This document shows, piece by piece, positions 18,382 through 31,884 of a stretch of 64,000 nt of DNA. The notes under the pieces are model-generated. The model made no database searches. It saw only the letters and a program-made list of their open reading frames with translations, and was not told the origin of the DNA. A program made the translations under genes and the position numbers. Every line of letters begins with the position of its first letter. Position 1 is the first letter of the stretch. The stretch is from Epithemia pelagica (Eukaryota; Protista; Bacillariophyta). Where the stretch lies: the NCBI GenBank assembly GCA_946965045.2, contig OX337241.1:2914001-2978000 (forward strand), read 5' to 3'.

Positions 18382-19925
18382 CTACAACAACAAGGAGGGC
18401 GCTGTGGTGGTGGGTGCACTGGTGGTGGGTGCAGTACTCGGTCCTAGCGTTGTGTTGGGGGAGGAGAATGGTACCCGTGTGGGATGTTCCGATGGATGCA
18501 ATGAAGGTTGATTCAATGGTGTTTCCGAGGGTCTCGAGGTGGGTGATGGAGAAGGCAAGATGGATGGAATCAAAGATGGAGAGGGAAGAATGGATGGTTT
18601 CGAAGACGGTTCATCACTAGGTGTGGAGGAAGGACGAGCCGAAATGATTGGTGTCCAAGAAGGCTGAAAGGAGGGTACGACGGAGGGTTGGGTGGATACC
18701 GTGGGCGTGGAGGAGGGCCGTGTCGATGGAAGAGTGGATGGTACCATACTCGGTTGAGGAGATGGCTGCCACGAGGGGATCCTGGAGGGATGCCCCGAAG
18801 GGATTGCCGATGGCTCGGTCGAAACTGTCGGGGCATGGGACGGTGTACTGGAAGGTTCCTGGGAAGGATTGGTAGATGGCGATTCACTGGGCATGGCTGA
18901 AGGATTGGTCGATAGCGTCGGTTGGTCCGATGGCATGGACGATGGTGTTTGGGAGGGTTGTGTCGACACGGTGGGTGTAGAAGAGGGTGCACTCGACGGA
19001 TTGTGGGAGGGTATCGAGCTGGGAGACTCGGACGGGTGAGAGGACAGCGTCGGCGTTTCACTGGGTTGTTTCGGCGGCGTGGATGACGGATGTGGGGAGG
19101 GCTGGTCACTTGGTTCACTCGAGGGGACCGACGACACGATGGGTTGGGGACTTGCTGTTGTAGTGTCCGTGGGTTTCGTCGATGGAAGGAAAGAAGGCTG
19201 TGTCGATGGCATAATAGAAGAGACTTTGGATGGATTGGTGGATGGGCTTTGCAGCGGCATTGTTGTGGGAGTGTGAGAGTGCCGATGGAGTGGCGGAAGG
19301 GACTGTTGATGGATGGATGGATGGTTTTTGCGAAGGGAGTGTTGTGGGAGTGTTGGAGGGGTTTCTCGGTAGAGTGGACGACCGTGAGACGGATGGCCTT
19401 ATGGACGGTGATTACGATGGTGCACCGGAAGAGGTTGTATGGTCGAGTTTCCGTGGGTTGTGTACTCGTAGTGCTGGACTGACGCACCATAGGCGAACCC
19501 GGTGGACCAGCCGTTGGTGCAGTAGTGGAAAAATTTGTTTCGGGATACGCCTCGACGAGACAATGCAAAAATCCCGTTGGAGTGGTAGTGGAAGTGGTGG
19601 TTTGATTCTAAGGAGTGGCGTCTTGTTGTTGTTGCGGTGGTTGCAATAGGGAAAACATGTCCTCATTATTCTCCGTGTCAGTGGGATCGAGACATTTATA
19701 AAGTGGTAATAACAAAATTGTAGGCCTTGTGACAGGCTTCAAACTTTTTAGCGTACCAGATACTCCACCAGGCATGGGTACAACTGCTATGTAATGTTTA
19801 CAAGACCAACTCGGATTGTCGATCCAATGCTACCAATTCCAAGTCCTTGTTGTTTGTTGTCACAATGTGGTGATCTCCTGGTGGAGTTGGTGTGGTTGTT
19901 GTGGGAACAAATTCAACCTTTGATG
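18382..19925 (-). pseudogene. Internally deleted pseudogene of the S8 subtilase at 22261..25098
   Basis: Retains the N-terminal pieces (KVEF...ELVALDRQSELVL, NEDMFSLLQ) and the whole Pro/Ser/Thr stalk and 3' flank. Most of the prodomain and the entire catalytic domain are gone. There is an in-frame TAG near 19610 and frameshifts near 19445 and 19700. Confidence 0.85.
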
Positions 19926-22260: not shown

Positions 22261-25098
22261 CTACAAGGAGGGCGTTGTGGTGGTGGGTGTACTGGTGGGG
22301 GTAGCGGTACTAGGCTCTAGTGTTGGGTTTGGGGAGGAGGAAGGGACCAGTGTGGGATGTTGGGATGGATGCGATGAAGGTTGATTCGATGGTGTCTTCG
22401 AGGGTCTCGAGGTGGGTGACTGAGAAGGAAGAATGGATGGTTTCGAAGACGGTTCGTGACTGGGTGTGGAGGAAGGACGAGACGAAATCGTCGGTGTCGA
22501 TGAAGGCTGAAAGGAGGGTACAACGGAGGGTTGCGTGGATACCGTCGGAGTGGAGGAGGGCTGTGTCGACGGAAGAGTAGATGGTACCATACTCGGTTGC
22601 GGAGATGGCTGCCACGAGGGAATCGTGGAGGGATGCCCCGAAGGGATTGCAGACGGCTCTGTCGAAACCGAAGGGGCATTGGACGGTGTACTGGAAGGTT
22701 CCTGGGAAGGATTGGTAGATGGCGATTCACTGGGCATGGCCGAAGGATTGGTCGATAATGTCGGTTGGTCCGACGGCATGGACGATGGTGTTTGGGAGGG
22801 TTGGGTCGACAAAGTGGGTGCCGAGGAGGGTGCACTCGACGGATTGTTGGAGGGTGCCGAACTGGGAGACACGGACGGATGAGAGGACAGCGTAGGCGTC
22901 TCACTGGGTTGATTCGACGGCGTGCAAGAGGGATGTTGGGAGGGCTGATCACTGGGTTCACTCGAGGGAACCGAGGAAATGGTGGGTTGGGGACTCGTTG
23001 TGGGAGTCTCTGTGGGTTGCGTCGAAGGAAGAAACGATGGCTGTGTCGATGGAGTAGTGGAAGGGACTTTGGATGGATTGGTGGATGGGCTTTGCAACGG
23101 CATTGTTGTGGGAGTGTGGGAGGGATTCTGCGATGGCCTGGACGAGGGTGACATGGATGGTCTCACGGATGGTACTGGCGATGGTGCACTCGAAGGTTGT
23201 ACCGTCGGAGTATTCGTGGGTTGTGTACTCGGGGTGCTGGACGGACGCACCGTGGGCAAACTCGTTTCGGGATAGGCCTCGACCAGACACTGCAAAAATC
23301 CCGTCGGATTGACCATGCCCGTTCCTTCCAGACGGTCATCGTCCAAGGGGAGTGCCGTATCGAAGAGACAGGTTTTGACATCGGATACGGTACTTTGGGG
23401 TCGCAAACTCTTGCCCATGGCCACCACACCGGCGACATGGGGACAGGCCATGCTCGTGCCACTCATCTTGAGGTATTGATTATTGGTTCCCGTGGACCAA
23501 ATGTGGACGCCCGGTGCCGCAATGTCGGTCCAAGTGCCGTAATTGGAAAAACTGGCCCGCCGACGTCCCGAGACATTCGTCGCGGCCACGGCCACCACGT
23601 GGGGATGCACGGCGGGATAATAGGACGCGTTGGAATTGCTATTGCCGGCCGCAAACAAGACCAACACATCATGGTCCAGCGCATACTGGAGAGCCGCCAC
23701 GACATCGGGTTCGTAGACATTGGGTTCCGCATAGCCCCAGGAATTGGAACTAATGTGCGCTCCCATGTCGACGGCATAGACCAAGGCTTCGGCAAAGCCG
23801 GCCGTATTGGTTTGACCAAATCCGACACTGGTCATGAGACGAATGCCCGTGCCTCCATGCGCCCCTCCAGCCACACCAGCAACACCCAGTCCGCCATTGT
23901 CGGTATTGGCCGCAATGGTTCCCGCGACATGACTGCCATGACTGCCGTGACCAAGGAGATGGGTATTGCCGACACTATCGCCATGATTGTAGCCAAAACA
24001 ATCATCCATGTAACCATTGCCATCGTCATCGACGCCATTGTTACATATTTCACCGGGGTTGACCCAGGGATTCGCGGCCAAGTCAACATGGTCCATATCC
24101 CATCCGGAATCCAAGACATGGACAATGGTTTCGGCCGCATGCTGCCATCCGTCGTGCTGTGCCATGAACTGCCATGCCGCACTGAGGTCAATGGTATCGT
24201 AATGAGACTGGTTTCCATTGGCATAATATTCATCATTAGGATCCTCCGGGCAATGCGTTGTGGTTGTGGCACGACGATGCTGGTTGCTTCGCAGCTTTCT
24301 ACTACTACCACCTCCTGCTTCTTGCGGGGATGGTTCCAAGTCCGAGGGTGATAGGGTTCCCCGATATTCCATGTCGACTTCTTCGTGTTCGGCATCCATG
24401 GACACAATGCTCCAATCGTCGTCTGGTTCCTTCTGGTCGTGGTGTTGTTGTTGTTCCCAGGCTTGTCGCAATCGAGCAATGGCTCGCAAGGTTCCCAGTC
24501 CTTTGGTATTGGTAGTGGTGGTGGAAGTGGTTTGATTTGCTTGTTGCTGTTCTTGTTGCAATAGGGAAAACATGTCCTCGTTGTTGTCCGAACTGGTTGG
24601 ATCGGGACATTTAAAGTGATAATGACAATGCAAATTGTAGGCCTTGTGCCGGGCTTCAAATTTGGGCGCATAGCGGATACTTCGCCAGGCATGAGTACAA
24701 ATGCCGTGCAATGTTTGCAAGACCAAGTCGGACTGTCGATCCAATTCGACCATTTCCCAGTCATTGTCATTTTCAGAATTGTTATTTTGGTCATCCTGGT
24801 GGTCGGGTCGAGTTGTAATGGCTGTAGTGGGACGAGCAAATTCCACCTTGAGAATGTCTCGGACCGTCCCTTGTTGCACCTGTTGCGTCAAGCGACGATT
24901 ATTGGGAAATTTGGGGGCCACACGATTACGACGATTCCGAGGATTGGGTTGCGCCGTCACGAAAAGGACCGCAACGAAGGAACGACGACCACCACCACCA
25001 ACCGCAAGCAGCACCACCACCAGAAATCGAATGAGACTTTGAAACCAACAGTGACTCGATTTCTTCGTCATCATTATTGCTTGGACTCCAAATGGCAA
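22261..25098 (-). CDS. Secreted S8 subtilisin-like serine protease with long Pro/Ser/Thr (PSxxP) mucin-like stalk
   Basis: 945-aa intronless ORF. Hydrophobic N-terminus, prodomain, catalytic D (VLDSG), H (HGSHVAGT), N (AAGN) and S (GTSMACPHVAG), loop GVDDDGNGYMDD, then about 340 aa of PS/PT repeats. Confidence 0.92.
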   Translation of the reverse strand: MPFGVQAIMMTKKSSHCWFQSLIRFLVVVLLAVGGGGRRSFVAVLFVTAQPNPRNRRNRVAPKFPNNRRLTQQVQQGTVRDILKVEFARPTTAITTRPDHQDDQNNNSENDNDWEMVELDRQSDLVLQTLHGICTHAWRSIRYAPKFEARHKAYNLHCHYHFKCPDPTSSDNNEDMFSLLQQEQQQANQTTSTTTTNTKGLGTLRAIARLRQAWEQQQHHDQKEPDDDWSIVSMDAEHEEVDMEYRGTLSPSDLEPSPQEAGGGSSRKLRSNQHRRATTTTHCPEDPNDEYYANGNQSHYDTIDLSAAWQFMAQHDGWQHAAETIVHVLDSGWDMDHVDLAANPWVNPGEICNNGVDDDGNGYMDDCFGYNHGDSVGNTHLLGHGSHGSHVAGTIAANTDNGGLGVAGVAGGAHGGTGIRLMTSVGFGQTNTAGFAEALVYAVDMGAHISSNSWGYAEPNVYEPDVVAALQYALDHDVLVLFAAGNSNSNASYYPAVHPHVVAVAATNVSGRRRASFSNYGTWTDIAAPGVHIWSTGTNNQYLKMSGTSMACPHVAGVVAMGKSLRPQSTVSDVKTCLFDTALPLDDDRLEGTGMVNPTGFLQCLVEAYPETSLPTVRPSSTPSTQPTNTPTVQPSSAPSPVPSVRPSMSPSSRPSQNPSHTPTTMPLQSPSTNPSKVPSTTPSTQPSFLPSTQPTETPTTSPQPTISSVPSSEPSDQPSQHPSCTPSNQPSETPTLSSHPSVSPSSAPSNNPSSAPSSAPTLSTQPSQTPSSMPSDQPTLSTNPSAMPSESPSTNPSQEPSSTPSNAPSVSTEPSAIPSGHPSTIPSWQPSPQPSMVPSTLPSTQPSSTPTVSTQPSVVPSFQPSSTPTISSRPSSTPSHEPSSKPSILPSQSPTSRPSKTPSNQPSSHPSQHPTLVPSSSPNPTLEPSTATPTSTPTTTTPSL

Positions 25099-26237
25099 AA
25101 TGGTTGCGATCCGTGTCCTTTGGTTGGAAGATTCCTTTCTACAGAGCAGGGTGAACGAGGAAAACTAGTGAAGACCAAGGGATTGTTACGCAACCATCAT
25201 CCCATGAATGGTGGAAGGCATGGTGGAATGAAAGACTGACCCCTCTGTGTGAACGGCTCGTGCCAAATGAAACAGGAATCGGGGGCCGTGTCGCTCGTTG
25301 GTAAGGTTATATTATACTATTCATTCAATGGTTAGTTGGTTTTTCGTTTGGGGGGAACGGCCCATGTCCCTTGTCGATGCCAATAATATGGTGGTTCTCT
25401 TCTCTTTTCTGACTGTCTTTTTCTTTTGTGGAGATTGGTGCGGAGTGACACGATCGATTTCTATTAAGCCCAACAAACTTTTCACGTCATTCGTAGCAGA
25501 CCTGGAAACTGGAAACCCCATTGGTCATTCCCTGCCGCACTCCACTACTGGCAACGAAAGTCCGGTCGAGGGACAGACATGGTTTCAGTTGGTAGGGCCC
25601 ATTCCGTCCCTACTAGAAAACGTATCTACAATACCGCTCGCCGCGAACAAAAGCAGTCGCAGACATCCAGTTCCAGTCGCATGGTGTGACCCTGCGGATG
25701 CAACTTCTTGGCGGGATGTGTTATGACGATGTGTGTGTTGTCGTTTGGAATTTTGTGTTCCTTTTCTCTCTCCAATTTTAGGTTCGACCTCTCTCGTTCC
25801 AACCACCAGTGTCGCTCGTTTCTACCGAATTCATCCATGGTTCCGAAGCCACTCCATAATTGCTACTCTACGAACTCCCGTGGTGATTGAATAAAAGAAA
25901 CTATATAGTATAACTCTACCAAAATACATCAGAGTTGTGGTTCACGGAAGAAGTCCGTTTCAACACAAAAGGATTTGCACACACCAACACGCTCCAAACA
26001 ACAACGACATCGCTCAAAGGTATGTGACACGTTCGTGGTGCGTTCCTGGATACAGCACCCACCCCCACGCCCCACAAAAAAAGGAACGAATGGTACATCG
26101 TTCCTCTAGAGAGGATATACACAGCAGGGTCTCCCGGGTGTTGTGGGTCGGTGCACGAAACAAATCACACACGATCCGCGTCGTTTGGCTCCAGCGCGTC
26201 GCAGTCGTTTAGCCGTTATGCAACGCGGCTTGCGGTA

Positions 26238-27205
26238 TTACAGCAGTCGCTTGCCGCTCTTCTTGTCAGAGTCGTCCTTGTAGTACCAGTCATCGTACAT
26301 GAAGTAGTCGTCATAGTCTTTCTTGCCCTTATCGTCCTTGTCGGATTCCTTCTTGCCCTTCTTGTCGGAATCATCCTTTTCGTCCGAATCCTTCTTTCCT
26401 TTGCCTTTGGAGCCGTCCATGCCCATACCCTTGCCCTTGGAGTAGTCATCCATACCCATTCCCTTGCCTTTGGAGTAGTCATCCATACCCATTCCCTTGC
26501 CCTTGGAGTAGTCATCCATGCCCATTCCGGTTGGTTTCGCAGTCGGCTCTGCTGTGGGTTTGACAGTTGGTTTGGAGGTTGGTACAGCTGTGGGTTTAAC
26601 GGTCGGCTTAAATGTTGGTTTGACGGTGGGTTTGACAGTTGGTTCAGCTGTGGGTTTGACAGTTGGTTTGGCCTTCTTGCCCTTGTAGTCATCGTCCATA
26701 CCCATACCCTTCTTGCCTTTGGAGTCATCGTCCATACTCATACCCTTACCCTTGGAGGAATCATCGTATCCCTTGGTGACGGGCTTGGCAGTTGGGTAAT
26801 AGTAGTCCTCGTCCATACCCTTTCCTTTGCCTTTGGAGCCGTCCATACCCATACCCTTGCCCTTGGAGTAGTCGTCCATACCCATTCCCTTGCCTTTGGA
26901 GTAGTCATCCATACCCATTCCCTTCTTGCCCTTGGAGTCATCGTCCATACCCATACCCTTCTTGCCTTTGGAGTCATCGTCCATGCTCTTTGCTTTCTTT
27001 GTATATTTCTATCCATAGGAAGCAATCGGAGTGGTTAGAAGAGGTGTGCTCCCAGCAATCCTTTGGGAATGCAGTGACTTTCGAAACGTACCATTTCGGG
27101 GAGATCTCTTTGGCTTTGTTCAAGATTGGCGGGCAACTCAATCAACTCGGATCTGACGAAGGCCGACGCTTGGAGCAACACGGCCAACACGATAGATTGC
27201 TTCAT
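26238..27205 (-). CDS. Secreted silaffin/cingulin-like Lys/Met/Asp/Tyr-rich repeat protein (2 exons, about 294 aa)
   Basis: Exon 1 27205..27092 encodes [38 protein letters not shown] (signal peptide + RDL). Phase-0 intron 27009..27091 (gtacgt...ctaac...atag). Exon 2 27008..26238 holds (MDDxSKGK(K)GMG)n repeats, a KPT/EPT segment, the Tyr/Trp-rich [16 protein letters not shown] and a terminal KRLL. Confidence 0.85.
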
Positions 27206-28679
27206 GATGATGGTGTGATAAACTCTAAGTGACTGTCACGAAGCAATGTGATGGTTTTCGTTTGCAGACCGTTTCGAATTGTGAGCTCTGCTGTACTAAC
27301 AAAAATGAGGCAGCAACGGACACTGAGGAAGAAGGGATTGGTCTTGTAGACTGATGGTGAGTTTTCCCGAAATTGCGAGTCTCTTTGAAAAAAGGAGGAA
27401 GTGTGTAGGGAAGCATGAGTGTGTGTTTAGGAGGAAGACAAGAGCCAGGCTCAATCCTGTCTAATTGAATATTCCTGAACGGCTAGTTCCTTCCATAAGA
27501 GAATGGGATGCTGGCTTTGCACACCAGTCTCTTTTATCGAATCAACACGGGCCATGGTTGGAACGCTGGACATGAAAAATCTCTCGGATCGTCCTTCCCC
27601 AGACTCGAATTTGGGATAAATTGAGGCGCTCGAGGGGATTCTGCGGGAAGCCTCGACGGGCGCGCATGGCACTAATACGAAGATTTTGATAAAGCGCGAC
27701 TGGAAAATTTCCGTTGGACTGTCCGGCTCGGTCGTTCCAAAAACGGGAGGTGGAATTCGGAGAAGGCCAAGCCCTTTTCGCACCGGTCACGACGAAGGTG
27801 CGACTCACCCACTTTTCCACTCTTTCATCTATACTCGATCTTCAACGGGACTGGCGTTCCATTCGCTGTCAAGTACGTACCACGTGACCACTTAGTAAAT
27901 TCAAACAGAGGATTGGCTTCTCAGGTATTCTACGCACGCAGCGCAATCTTATCGTACAATCCACCTATCCTGCGCGGGAAGTGGTCACGCCTGAATGCCG
28001 AGGCGGACGAGTCGTTTGAAAATTCGCTTTGTATAGCTATTGTCACAATTCAAAAATCCATAACGCGACCTGTCAAATCAAACCTCACCAAAAGTCGAGG
28101 AGTATCGCGCTTTGTCCTGAAATCTCATCGGAGAGGAACACCAGTTAAGGATGGAGTTCACAAGTAAGAATCAAGAGTGACTCGAGGCATTGGCAATGTG
28201 CCTTGGATTCCAATGGTAGGACTGGAAGACAGGTCCGTGTACGAGGAGGCAGTATACGCTGTCGTCGCGGAAGGAATCTGGTGCACGGAATCTGGTCGAG
28301 GACACTATAACTCCACACGCTTGGAAGCAATGGGAAACCAATCCAGAGAAAGGAGACACATTGAGTGTCATCTTGTTGGTGTTGTTCCGTGATGACATAA
28401 TCAATTCGTCTTATGCGACGAATAGCGGCTTGAAAGATGGGTTCTGGACCGCTTTACTAGAAAGATGGTTTGTCCGGCACGGTTGTGTTGATTCTCGATG
28501 GAATGAAGAAGCTTGCAAATAAGTATCCAGCGATAAATCGAACTCCTTGAGTCTTGGTTCGGTACAGTCCAAAAATACAACCATTACAATGTGCCATGTT
28601 CTTTCCAGCAAAATGCTTGCCCTCTTGGCAGTGGCAAGGGCAACGCAGTTCTCTCGGCAGTGCATCATGTCCCAGTATC

Positions 28680-28953
28680 CGGGGAACCATCTCCGCAGCC
28701 GAGTATACTACCAACCAATCTTCCATCGGTTCAGCCCTCCTCCACTCCCGCGGTATCAACACAAGCCTCGGCCGAACCCTCCTTTCTGCCTTCTTCTTTA
28801 CCAACCATTTCTTCTCGTCCTTCCTCAACACACAGTCACGAACCGTCTTTGATTATATTTATCCTTTCTTCACATTCACCCTCATCTCAACCCTCTGAAA
28901 CACCAGCGAAACAGCCTTTGGTTCATCCCTCCAGACATCCCACAATGGTTTGA
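28680..28953 (+). pseudogene. Inverted fragment of the S8 subtilase Pro/Ser stalk
   Basis: Translates EPSPQPSILPTNLPSVQPSSTPAVSTQASAEPSFLPSSLPTISSRPSSTHSHEPS...PSRHPTMV. This is collinear with QPSPQPSMVPSTLPSTQPSSTPTVSTQPSVVPSFQPSSTPTISSRPSSTPSHEPS...PSQHPTLV of the 22261..25098 protein. Confidence 0.75.
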
Positions 28954-29472
28954 ACCAATGGTATAACTCATGATTCATTTTTTCAAGACAGAATAGATTA
29001 TAATTCTAATTCGTATGCCGTTCCAACGAAAGTCGTGGTGGATGATGAGAATGACAAGGAACGCTTGTTACCGTTTTCTGCTACCTGGTGTCCACACGAC
29101 TCACTTGGGTACCAAAGCTTAGGACTGCAAGCCATGTTCATACACTACTAGGAGGCAGAATACTTTTGTCCAGGAAGCAATCTGGTGCACTGAGCCTTTG
29201 GTTCATCCCTCCAGACATCCCACAATGGTTTGAACCAATGGTATAACTCATGATTCATTTTTTCAAGACAGAATAGATTATAATTCTAATTCGTATGCCG
29301 TTCCAACGAAAGTCGTGGTGGATGATGAGAATGACAAGGAACGCTTGTTACCGTTTTCTGCTACCTGGTGTCCACACGACTCACTTGGGTACCAAAGCTT
29401 AGGACTGCAAGCCATGTTCATACACTACTAGGAGGCAGAATACTTTTGTCCAGGAAGCAATCTGGTGCACTG
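28913..29472. repeat. Perfect 280-bp tandem duplication
   Basis: 28913..29192 and 29193..29472 (AGCCTTTGGTTCATCCC...TCTGGTGCACTG) appear identical base for base. Confidence 0.95.
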
Positions 29473-30027
29473 AAATTAGAACCATCGGGTCCAGAGAAAG
29501 GAGACACTTGTCATTCGGCAACTGCTGATTCCATTCTTCGACTGAGTTTCAAGGTGCGAGTACAATCATGACGATGTGACACTGCTCACAAACGGAAAAT
29601 TTTACAACACACCTGGAGAAGAGTAGCATTACGCGAAAAGAGACTTACCATAAAAGTAAGAGCACCTACAGTGGTCAGTCGTTTGAGAACTGCAGTTGCA
29701 GCGACAGCATGTCAAGTGCTGGTCCATACACAAGAGACAAGGAAGAGGAAGAATACACAATCGTTCTTTGTTATGCAAGGTAATGTATCAAGTCTTTTAG
29801 TTTCTATGATAAATCTTTTCTTTAACTGAGCTGGAGTTCAAATCATCTTCAGGGTGACATCGCCAATTTCTTCTGTTCATCAAGGAGAAGGGGGTTCAGT
29901 CCTCCGACGAGGCTTGTTGTTGTTTTTCCCGAATGCGACGAACGGCGCTTTGGAAAATGGGTTCTCGACCGCGTTGTTTGAAAATAGTTTGCCCGGCACG
30001 GAAGTGAGGATTCTTGTCGGGACGTTG

Positions 30028-30771
30028 TCAATGAAGAGGCTGCTGCTTGCGTTCCAGGGTGTGGATGGTGCTCGTTCTCGAAAAAGAATCCGTTTCGGGT
30101 TGAAAGAGACCAGGCGCTGCGGCGGGGAAGGACGATATCTCGATATTGATGGTCTTGGTTCGTGAATTTTGTGACTGCGTTTCTTCTTGTCGTGGCTTGG
30201 GTTCATGTTGATGAACACGCGCGGGAGAAATATGGTTGTCTGACACAAGAGTTTCCTGCTGAAATAGACGCGGAGCTGCAGCGGGCAAGGACGATGTCTT
30301 GATGTTAATGGTCTTGGTTCGTGTATTAAGCGATGTTTTTTCGTCTTGTCGTGGTTTGGGCTCATGTTGTTGGACACGCGAGGGGGAAATATGGGTGTGC
30401 GACACAAGAGTTTCGGGTTGAAAGAGACCAGGCGCTGTGGCAGGCAAGGATGTTGTCGCGATATTCATTGTCTTGGTTCGTGAGTTTTGTGCTTCTTCAT
30501 GTCGTGGTTTGGGTTCATGTTGCTGGACACGCGAGGGGGACAAATGATTCCGAGACGACGAGAGTGGAGTTTCGGATGGAGAGGAGATCTTGAGTGCCCA
30601 CGCGGTTTCATCATGCTTTGGTTGTTGTTCTTGTGGACCGGTGGCGTCACTTTGCACCAAAATGGGAGTCGTTGGGTCGATCAAAGAGGTCTCATTCTTG
30701 ACATCGGCAGCCAAGGATGAGGAGGTCCACAGCAACATGCATGATAGGGCAACCCGCGGTGATTTGAACAT
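30028..30771 (-). CDS. Secreted protein with three 51-53-aa repeats (SPxRVxQHEPKPR...), probably C-terminally truncated
   Basis: MFKSPRVALSCMLLWTSSSLA signal peptide, then three repeats. The TGA at 30028-30030 aligns with CGA in the paralog, and the frame stays open for 43 more codons to QQQASSED* at 29896. Confidence 0.6.
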   Translation of the reverse strand: MFKSPRVALSCMLLWTSSSLAADVKNETSLIDPTTPILVQSDATGPQEQQPKHDETAWALKISSPSETPLSSSRNHLSPSRVQQHEPKPRHEEAQNSRTKTMNIATTSLPATAPGLFQPETLVSHTHISPSRVQQHEPKPRQDEKTSLNTRTKTINIKTSSLPAAAPRLFQQETLVSDNHISPARVHQHEPKPRQEETQSQNSRTKTINIEISSFPAAAPGLFQPETDSFSRTSTIHTLERKQQPLH

Positions 30772-30979
30772 TGTAACTCTTGTAGAACAAAGTATGCCGT
30801 GAGATAGAGTTTGTGCAGAAGCTTGTTGCGTCCACCCAGCAAATTGTGATACATCAACGCAAGTACGATGGCACTCGATCATGATTCTTGTAAAGGCACG
30901 CCCCAAATTCTCTCATGGTCATCCACAATATCGTTGGATTCCGACAAAACTGGAGAGTGGGGGATAGCCAGATTTTTGG

Positions 30980-31884
30980 GTGAAAACACGACTGGTCAAT
31001 CGTGTCCAAAATCAGGGGCAGAACAGAATAATTAGGGGGTCAGAATTTAGAACTGATGAGGAGAGCGCGACACTTCAATTTACCTACCTTACAATAGAGC
31101 TGTACAGCCTACGATCTGCAATACCGACGGTGAACGACGGGAGCAACGGAGAGACCGCCTCTTCGCCATCGGAGCAAAAGTTTACAAAGCTGCACTTTTA
31201 CACGACGACTGGTGATGGGCAAGACACCAATGCTCATGTGGGAGAGCTGAAGGAAAAGGGTACATCGCAGCAGCAAATGATGCGACCTGATGGGTCGTTA
31301 CTCCAATGGAAAACTGATGGAGAATCGGGATCTTCCTACATGTCAACAACGAACGACGTACCCAGTTCTTCATCGTCCGCTGACAAACAAGTTTCTAAAG
31401 GCAAGAGCGAGATGGAAGGATACCTTCCAGTGCCGAATGAAAAAAGCCGCCCACGGGAACGCAAACGTCAAAAGAAAGCCCCAATGCCGAACGAGACGCA
31501 CATGAAAATTCGTGCTGCCGTTGACGCTGGTGACAACTGGGAGCTGGATCTGGAACGTAAGCATGGCCTTTCCGACATGGAAGCCTGCGTTTGCGTTGGT
31601 TCATTGCCAAGTACCAAATGCACGAATCGTTCCCCGACAAGGAGCATGGGGTGAAGCAGCAGCTTGTGGATTTGGCACGCGAAGGATTTCAACACTTGAA
31701 AACAGCGCAACAACTCTTTGAACAGTATCCACATGAAATGGGTGAGCAAACCAAAATCCAAGGAACTTGGAAAATGATCACAGGCGAAGCTACATTGCAA
31801 CGATTGAAGGCCAAGCGCGAGAAAGAGTTGGAACTATTGAAGACCAAAAGCGACAAAGGCGTGCCTGGTTCGGCGAAATTGTAA
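30980..31884 (+). pseudogene. Frameshifted hypothetical protein (helical, with basic NLS-like RERKRQKK)
   Basis: ORFs 30980..31654 and 31591..31884 join into ...HGLSDMEALRLRWFIAKYQMHESF... if one C is restored at GCC-TGCG (about 31585). There is no clear ATG start. Confidence 0.45.

Follow-up and report, generated by a model that had tools for sequence, protein, structure and literature searches.

A predicted methionine-bearing variant of a known pennate-diatom surface-protein class, carried by one haplotype contig of Epithemia pelagica

The locus, its gene model and its repeat modules

The window (the whole stretch of DNA that was analysed, 64,000 nucleotides of Epithemia pelagica contig OX337241.1) carries on its minus strand a predicted two-exon gene coding for a highly repetitive protein of the secreted type. 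Its parts, and the segment in which the whole gene lies, are as follows.

27205-27092, minus strand: exon 1, 38 aa by translation, with its ATG at 27205
27161..27205, minus strand: putative signal peptide of 15 aa that opens exon 1 (MKQ, hydrophobic core, ASA)
27092..27160, minus strand: predicted acidic propeptide that closes exon 1, with the RDL (RXL) site at 27101-27109
27009..27091, minus strand: predicted intron of 83 nt, GT..AG (GTACGT...ATAG), phase 0
26238..27008, minus strand: exon 2, 256 codons and a TAA stop (26238-26240)
26673..26984, minus strand: repeat block A, 7 MDDxSKGK(K)GMG units, with a YYY / KPV patch inside (26736-26816)
26526..26672, minus strand: KPTx (PT) rod, 11 tetrapeptide units, Pfam PT
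26397..26525, minus strand: repeat block B, 4 units of an 11-letter type
26328..26396, minus strand: D/K zwitterionic block, 23 aa
26241..26327, minus strand: aromatic-acidic tail, with a 16-letter aromatic-acidic stretch and the terminus KSGKRLL
25972..29618, no strand assigned: segment of 3,647 bp that holds the whole gene and is absent by blastn from the syntenic contig ctg1277l

In the predicted model, exon 1 starts at the first ATG after a stop. The 3' end of the predicted intron reads ...CTATGGATAG, with 27009 as its last base; the exon-2 frame is closed by a TAG codon just before 27008, which makes 27008 the earliest acceptor position able to join both exons in frame. Predicted splicing gives a precursor of 294 aa, of which 38 aa are contributed by exon 1 and 256 aa by exon 2. 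The signal peptide was called by inspection and hydropathy: exon 1 has a Lys at position 2, a 9-residue Kyte-Doolittle mean that rises to 2.71 and ASA at positions -3 to -1. By the same means, exon 2 is found to contain neither a hydrophobic stretch nor a transmembrane helix. The RDL site occupies precursor residues 33-35 and is followed by PEM and then by KYTKKAKS. On contig ctg1341l, which is identical to the window at this locus, a gene caller also gives ORFs of 248 aa and 56 aa. An Rfam search of positions 24000-31000 returned no match. The two exons were searched and folded separately.

Exon 2 is built of 11 repeats of the form MD(D/G)(D/Y)SKGK(K)G(MG), which give rise to 10 MxM pairs and on which Tandem Repeats Finder scores reach 210. 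Aromatic patches lie at exon-2 residues 69-71 and 232-243, and the composition is dominated by Lys (23%), Asp (17%), Gly (16%) and Met (9%), followed by Ser (7.8%) and Tyr (6.2%); His and Cys are both absent (0). The PT rod is recognised by the Pfam PT model (PF04886) with 46.6 bits against a gathering cut-off of 26.2, over exon-2 residues 115-148; PF04886 is a linker-type, low-complexity model that says nothing on function. Folded alone with AlphaFold2, exon 2 reaches a mean pLDDT of 49.6 and shows no secondary structure, and the protein thus looks, in this model, like an intrinsically disordered polyampholyte. The earlier note on this DNA had proposed the two-exon structure with its 83-nt intron, signal peptide and RDL, and had read in the mature part about 11 Met repeats, YYY, aromatic patches, a PT rod, a D/K block and KRLL; all of these are found as sequence features at the coordinates given there, those that span the two exons under predicted splicing.

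Repeat arrays of this kind are open in several frames, and a plus-strand ORF of 295 aa overlaps the repeats. Among the repeat cores (n=8), however, 3/4 of the variable columns are third codon positions, and pairwise comparison of the cores counts 47 synonymous against 15 non-synonymous codon differences. Judged by this third-position variation, the coding frame is that of the minus strand, and the 295-aa ORF on the plus strand is a mirror artefact of the repeats. The codon pattern, the Tandem Repeats Finder scores and the genome-wide count of the KGKGMxMD pattern all set the repeats above chance.

Class membership and tests against biosilica proteins

The Y-rich proteins of Amphora coffeaeformis are characterised by a signal peptide, an RXL-ended propeptide, KG, KPTY and DK repeats and Tyr-acidic patches (PMC4220933). 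The window gene has the RXL-ended propeptide directly before a Lys-rich segment, and its KG, KPTx and DK parts amount to 11 KGK(K)G, 11 KPTx-type units and the 23-aa D/K block. An RXL site shortly before the Lys-rich part is also found in AC4076, AC1077, AC714 and AC3362. Buhmann et al. 2014 discovered the class by screening for a mussel-adhesive-like K/Y composition, set at Y>8% with K>20% in 50-200 aa or at Y>10% with K>20% in 100-300 aa (PMC4220933). In the window gene, Y>8% together with K>20% is reached by 21 spans of 50 aa and by 0 spans of at least 100 aa, and 0 spans have Y>10%.

The likeness differs from member to member. AC3362 has the same succession of signal peptide, acidic RXL-ended propeptide, KG repeats, long KPTx rod and further KG repeats, but it continues into a C-terminal folded AOC/dirigent-like domain and a Cys-rich module, neither of which is present in the window gene; its repeats read DYKGKG where those of the window gene, which carry Met and Asp, read MDDxSKGKGMG, and it is 666 aa long against 294 aa. 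The test for orthology with AC3362 is negative on the same ground, as neither Pfam nor AlphaFold2 finds an AOC/dirigent-like C-terminal domain in the window gene. AC714 resembles it in KG repeats with an occasional Met, KPTY repeats, a DK-repeat block and Tyr-acidic patches, and AC4076 in an RDL placed directly before a Lys-rich peptide and in a YDDWYY-type patch, so that order and motifs match. Both differ in having far more Tyr (up to 48-53% in patches) and no MxM repeat, and alignable homology between either of them and the window gene is confined to low-complexity modules. The novelty claimed by the earlier note thus holds for the Met-containing KGKGMxMD repeat and for this particular mosaic but not for the kind of protein, since the modules of AC3362, AC714 and AC4076 had already been described (PMC4220933).

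The same note had called the protein silaffin/cingulin-like. Silaffins are released by ammonium fluoride, are modified by polyamines or methylation on Lys and by phosphorylation, and precipitate silica. Those of C. fusiformis (Sil1p/natSil-1A) and T. pseudonana (Sil1-4) share with the window protein a signal peptide, RXL processing and clustered Lys, and their RXL-type C-terminal ends, RRIL/RRNL, resemble the terminal KRLL found here. Of the silaffin features, an ER signal peptide without a transmembrane helix is present by inspection and hydropathy, and an RXL site is present as a motif, both in the RDL of the precursor and in a C-terminal RLL. Silaffins differ, however, in being Ser-rich and phosphorylated and in carrying pentalysine clusters. 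The screen of Scheffel et al. in 2011 reportedly looked for about 18% Ser or more and 10% Lys or more per 100 aa; Lys rises here to 24 per 100 aa, but Ser, at 7.8% overall, never exceeds 10 in any 100-aa span and so falls short of that level. As Ser is scarce, heavy phosphorylation is unlikely. The pentalysine regular expression K..K..K.{1,2}K..K, quoted in bioRxiv 10.1101/2021.09.18.460806, has 0 matches in the exon-2 protein. A looser silica-targeting rule (2 or more K..K motifs spaced by 10 residues at most) does pick out the sequence, with 13 K..K motifs and runs (gaps of 9 or fewer) that start at exon-2 residues 1-26, 97-111 and 203-227. Every Lys cluster here is flanked by Asp, unlike those of the silica-targeting peptides tested elsewhere. 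The role of the RXL motif in processing is described in PMC4557024.

Cingulins CinY and CinW of Thalassiosira pseudonana are likewise secreted and repetitive, alternate Lys-rich with aromatic parts and contain RXL sites. Their K(S/G)2-4K-rich domains alternate with Tyr- or Trp-rich domains (PMC9650480), whereas the lysines of the window protein stand in K-G-K(K) with Asp and Met as neighbours; a search for K[SG]2-4K finds a single match, KSGK at exon-2 residue 250. Insolubility in ammonium fluoride is common to cingulins and AC3362-like proteins. What survives of the earlier designation is therefore the general cell-surface/biosilica type (secreted-type, low-complexity, RXL-bearing and Lys-rich); strict silaffin or cingulin identity was rejected on low Ser, the missing pentalysine pattern and the one K[SG]2-4K. 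As far as sequence goes, the gene is a Met-bearing, domain-less variant of a known pennate-diatom surface-protein class, and by the tests applied it is neither silaffin nor cingulin.

Within the genome examined, which comprises 60.5 Mb on 23 contigs, a DNA pattern for KGKGMxMD has 20 matches against 0 for the control and is confined to 3 genes, namely the window gene and one gene each on contigs C2 (~3.944 Mb) and C3 (~2.470 Mb). The C2 and C3 genes both code for Spondin_N (PF06468) proteins; the former is a single 529-aa ORF in which a signal peptide is followed by RRL, (SAKGKGMDMD)n, (KGKGKGYEDS)n, (KPTP)n, KGKG repeats and Spondin_N. The (KG)4 DNA pattern has 110 matches, against 6 for its control, at more than 30 loci, several of which combine it with a signal peptide, RXL and PT. 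A layout of signal peptide, often RXL, acidic KGKG, KPTx and KGKG is shared with four loci (L003, L004, L005 and L013) that end in an AOC/dirigent-like domain, and the same KGKG/KPTx layout recurs without a folded domain in 4 tandem genes on contig C1. Among the distinct class genes, 5/6 have an RXL shortly before the Lys-rich part, with a rough chance expectation of ~16% per gene. The aromatic tail has no second copy in the genome, and the GKMYG pattern is not enriched in it; a tandem repeat on contig C8 was considered and set aside as unrelated.

Searches beyond this genome returned little. A word search with exon 2 produced 97 matches, all of them to PT linkers, over ~6-36% of the query and mostly bacterial; they were rejected as homology because they reflect PT-linker low complexity. 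The C-terminal 61 aa had no match in a word search. Comparison of the N-terminal repeat block with 1.84 billion representatives by HMMER gave 3 matches, none of which was accepted as a relative; when their sequences were read they looked like an NHL/B-box-type protein, a neuropeptide-precursor-like protein and another repeat protein, apparently of animal type, and they were dismissed as chance repeat matches. The ESM Atlas gave no usable match, the JGI metagenome contigs no relative, and the AOC/dirigent-like domain of L003, used as query in a word search, no matches. No relative of the gene was thus found outside the genome. Where other published diatoms are concerned this absence is firm, whereas for sister strains it is soft, as the collections may lack records of this genome and its close relatives.

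A young mosaic gene

The PT rod has a close counterpart elsewhere in the genome. Nucleotides 26525-26644 (CDS 365-484) match positions 470-590 of the L004 gene on contig C6 with 97.5% identity over 121 nt, with 2 mismatches and 1 gap, and a longer match to the same gene has 91% identity over 146 nt; the other genomic PT arrays reach only 75-80% against the rod of the window gene. The C6 gene is of the AOC/dirigent type and lies on a chromosome other than that of the window. Its C-terminal domain, compared by eye, shares ELCTR, CEGN, DLYGCSGQL and ITGGTGDF with AC3362 and is ~55% identical to it over 62 residues; on these shared motifs, the donor of the PT rod is an AC3362 homologue.

The Met repeats have 76-81% nucleotide identity with the Spondin_N genes and with a gene on contig C18 (76-78% for the repeats of block A against those of the Spondin_N genes). 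Positions 26394-26498 and 26820-26924 are 98% identical to each other and bracket the PT insert; by this identity the pair is a young internal duplication. Taken together, these nucleotide comparisons show the window gene, as far as identity levels can date it, to be a young mosaic with a PT rod recently copied from the gene of an AC3362 homologue.

The gene is also unevenly distributed between haplotypes. Two syntenic contigs, ctg1341l and ctg1277l, are present in ENA sample ERZ21939226, the second of which lies outside the 23-contig assembly. The first agrees with the window in every base over 12.6 kb; the second has flanks that are 94-96% identical to it but passes directly from 25971 to 29619, and so lacks the 3,647-bp segment. 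The junction of the segment shows CAACACA...AG microhomology. Besides the gene, the segment holds an inverted fragment of the PTS tail of the neighbouring subtilase and a tandem duplication of 280 bp whose copies match perfectly. A transposon origin was rejected: a search for inverted repeats of at least 20 nt found none at the segment, its ends included, and outside the repeat modules the segment is single-copy. It is either an insertion in the window haplotype or a deletion in ctg1277l. Since the second haplotype contig lacks it, the gene is probably dispensable.

The main interest of the locus is evolutionary, and lies in the visible shuffling of modules and in presence/absence between haplotypes; the window gene alone opens no long-standing question. 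If expressed and wall-bound, it would offer a clean and datable case of the birth of a low-complexity protein, in which a 121-nt PT copy, repeats shared with Spondin_N genes and a block duplication come together on one haplotype. Such module shuffling bears on the rarity of interspecies homology among biosilica-associated proteins.

Proposed role and competing explanations

The reading that we prefer, with a probability of roughly one half, is that of a secreted, disordered protein of the KG/KPTx/DK/Tyr-acidic class that becomes incorporated in the wall-associated matrix of a raphid diatom. It draws on AC3362, whose YFP fusion is retained in walls washed with hot SDS and in the ammonium-fluoride-insoluble biosilica matrix, and from which only short C-terminal fragments, without the KG/KPTY part, can be extracted; its authors take this N-terminal repeat part to be needed for incorporation (PMC4220933). 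The precursor of the window gene would enter the ER co-translationally, with cleavage of the signal peptide behind ASA; a second cut, at RDL, would free it of the acidic propeptide and leave a mature protein of ~259 aa for export to the cell wall. If AC3362 is a guide, the repeats with their Lys and Asp may bind there by multivalent electrostatic contacts, whether to silica and polyamines, to acidic polysaccharides or to other proteins of the matrix. The KPTx rod would act as an extended spacer, probably O-glycosylated, and the Tyr/Trp patches might help the protein into the insoluble organic matrix that lies on the biosilica or surrounds it. A role of the window gene in the silica shell is, on the same analogy, plausible. 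AC3362, the sole localised member of the class, has the folded C-terminal domain that is absent here, an observation that weighs against carrying its wall role over, as do the scarcity of Ser, the Asp beside each Lys cluster and the negative silaffin and cingulin tests; the looser K..K rule, which picks out three regions, speaks in favour. If the protein is expressed and wall-bound, its Met/Asp repeat type joins a small set of wall-matrix proteins of pennate diatoms.

Unlikely, though the first of the alternatives to be weighed, is a recently assembled mosaic ORF that does little or nothing, thrown up by recombination between wall-protein genes that carry repeats, and now either segregating as an insertion or on its way out by deletion. 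Absence from the other haplotype and the lack of relatives beyond the genome mean that function could be neutral or nil. The haplotype-specific segment with its inverted subtilase fragment and 280-bp duplication, the copying of the PT rod at 97.5% and the doubling of an internal block at 98%, and the failure to find homologues elsewhere all agree with such an origin; moreover, as the repeats are open in several frames, up to the 295 aa of the plus-strand ORF, the length of the ORF is weak proof of coding. The gene model is nevertheless coherent, from an ATG placed after a stop through signal peptide, RXL, phase-0 intron and an in-frame, non-repeat tail to its own stop, and the differences between repeats are mostly synonymous, neither of which sits well with a functionless by-product.

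Rather improbable, too, is a secreted component of adhesive, mucilage or trail, in which Lys/Tyr/Gly-rich repeats would serve a benthic raphid diatom as they serve the coacervating adhesives of the mussel foot. The A. coffeaeformis class owes its discovery to a mussel-adhesive-like K/Y screen whose 50-aa threshold is passed by the 21 spans counted above, and three of its members, AC714, AC4076 and AC1077, were not localised (PMC4220933). [quoted passage not shown] Tyr, moreover, makes up just 6.2% of the window protein overall, and incorporation in the wall-associated matrix is preferred.

The methionines suggest a further explanation, to which we give little credence, namely a buffer for metals or oxidants at the cell surface, with MxM pairs that would bind Cu(I)/Ag(I) in the manner of Ctr1/COPT or CopA/PcoA, or with Met residues spent sacrificially. 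At 9% Met, the protein presents its 10 MxM pairs evenly spaced beside Asp, and the KGKGMxMD motif is limited to three genes of the genome. In human Ctr1, Met-only MxMxxM motifs are reported to be selective for Cu(I)/Ag(I) (PMC9117721), and N-terminal extracellular Mets motifs are a feature of the CTR/COPT family (PMC4039008). The likeness, which is compositional only, lies in repeated MxM within an extracellular, disordered, Asp-containing context; Mets-type sites cluster three or more Met as M-x(1-2)-M-x(1-2)-M, often with His, and the window protein differs in having not one such three-Met motif, no His, no Cys and no transporter domain. Furthermore, its Met repeats occupy the slot that is filled in sister genes by Met-free KGKG repeats, and the literature searched contained nothing that connects Met-rich proteins to the walls of diatoms. 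It is correspondingly doubtful that KGKGMxMD constitutes a new extracellular Met module, directed at Cu(I) or oxidants and grafted onto wall proteins by repeat shuffling, of which the window gene would be a free-standing, haplotype-specific copy.

Import into the plastid is very improbable. An ASAFAP-type bipartite presequence might be read from the predicted cleavage site, where ASA is followed by Phe; Phe in this +1 position is, as Gruber et al. reportedly stated in 2015, the key feature for ASAFind. The earlier note had already counted the acidic segment after ASAF against import, and the 23 residues of the would-be transit peptide indeed include 5 acidic and 2 basic ones and only 2 Ser/Thr. 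What follows is a repeat protein rich in Lys, linked by PT and extracellular in type. The paralogues that share the repeats start with ordinary signal peptides, lack Phe at +1 and show RRL right in front of KGKG.

Secreted-protein genes around the Lys/Met repeat gene

The nearest gene downstream of the one coding for the predicted secreted Lys/Met repeat protein lies on the same strand and encodes a subtilase, whose tail, about 330 aa long, is PTS-rich and mucin-like and also occurs as two partial copies nearby. Positions in the window are as follows.

18385-19260 (18.4-19.3 kb), minus strand: partial duplicate of the subtilase PTS tail
22264-25098, minus strand: subtilase gene (Peptidase_S8, E 4e-41)
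28591-28953, plus strand: inverted fragment of the subtilase PTS tail (77-81% identity)
28913-29472: tandem duplication of a 280-nt unit, in two copies 100% identical
30028-30906, minus strand: repeat-bearing ORF of 292 aa
36837-39257, minus strand: reprolysin/M12B-like zinc metalloprotease ORF of 807 aa

The tail and its partial duplicate are about 89% identical at the nucleotide level, the copies having been compared on the other haplotype; the inverted fragment and the tandem duplication both lie inside the haplotype-specific segment that contains the repeat-protein gene. RXL sites are cut by a protease in diatoms, and that a subtilase adjoins a gene bearing such a site is only a coincidence, albeit one worth keeping in mind. 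Together with the subtilase, the metalloprotease ORF makes this neighbourhood rich in secreted proteins. The 292-aa ORF carries several repeats, the unit of which contains ISPSRVQQHEPKPR, and has no Pfam match.

Divergence between the two haplotype contigs

The window and ctg1277l, the corresponding contig of the other haplotype (ENA ERZ21939226), stay syntenic for more than 15 kb and differ there by 4-6% in sequence, with several offsets by repeat units along the way, including at the 292-aa ORF, where the alignment is shifted in this manner. This divergence is high for alleles, and it could also stem from two strains or a hybrid genome.

Related repeat genes elsewhere in the assembly

Genes with KG-type repeats and KPTx arrays at other loci of the genome assembly (G000) include the following.

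C1:1353000-1362500 (L014): tandem group of four genes (276-285 aa) that are almost the same in sequence
C3:2468500-2472500 (L011): C3 copy of the gene combining KGKGMxMD repeats with Spondin_N
C18:1167000-1170500 (L012): gene with a signal peptide and an acidic EEEEEE stretch

Each of the tandem genes on C1 encodes a signal peptide followed by KGKK/KGKG repeats, after which come a (KPTx)n array and further KGKG repeats, and all four are devoid of both a folded domain and an RXL site. In the C3 copy the reading frame shifts within the PT array, so that the gene is split between two ORFs (330 and 291 aa) that overlap but are read in different frames; a short intron, a frameshift or a slip of the assembly within the repeat could account for this. 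The C18 gene also has KGKGM-type repeats, which are Lys/Met-rich, and a (KPTP/KPSP)n array that, at about 190 residues, is unusually long.
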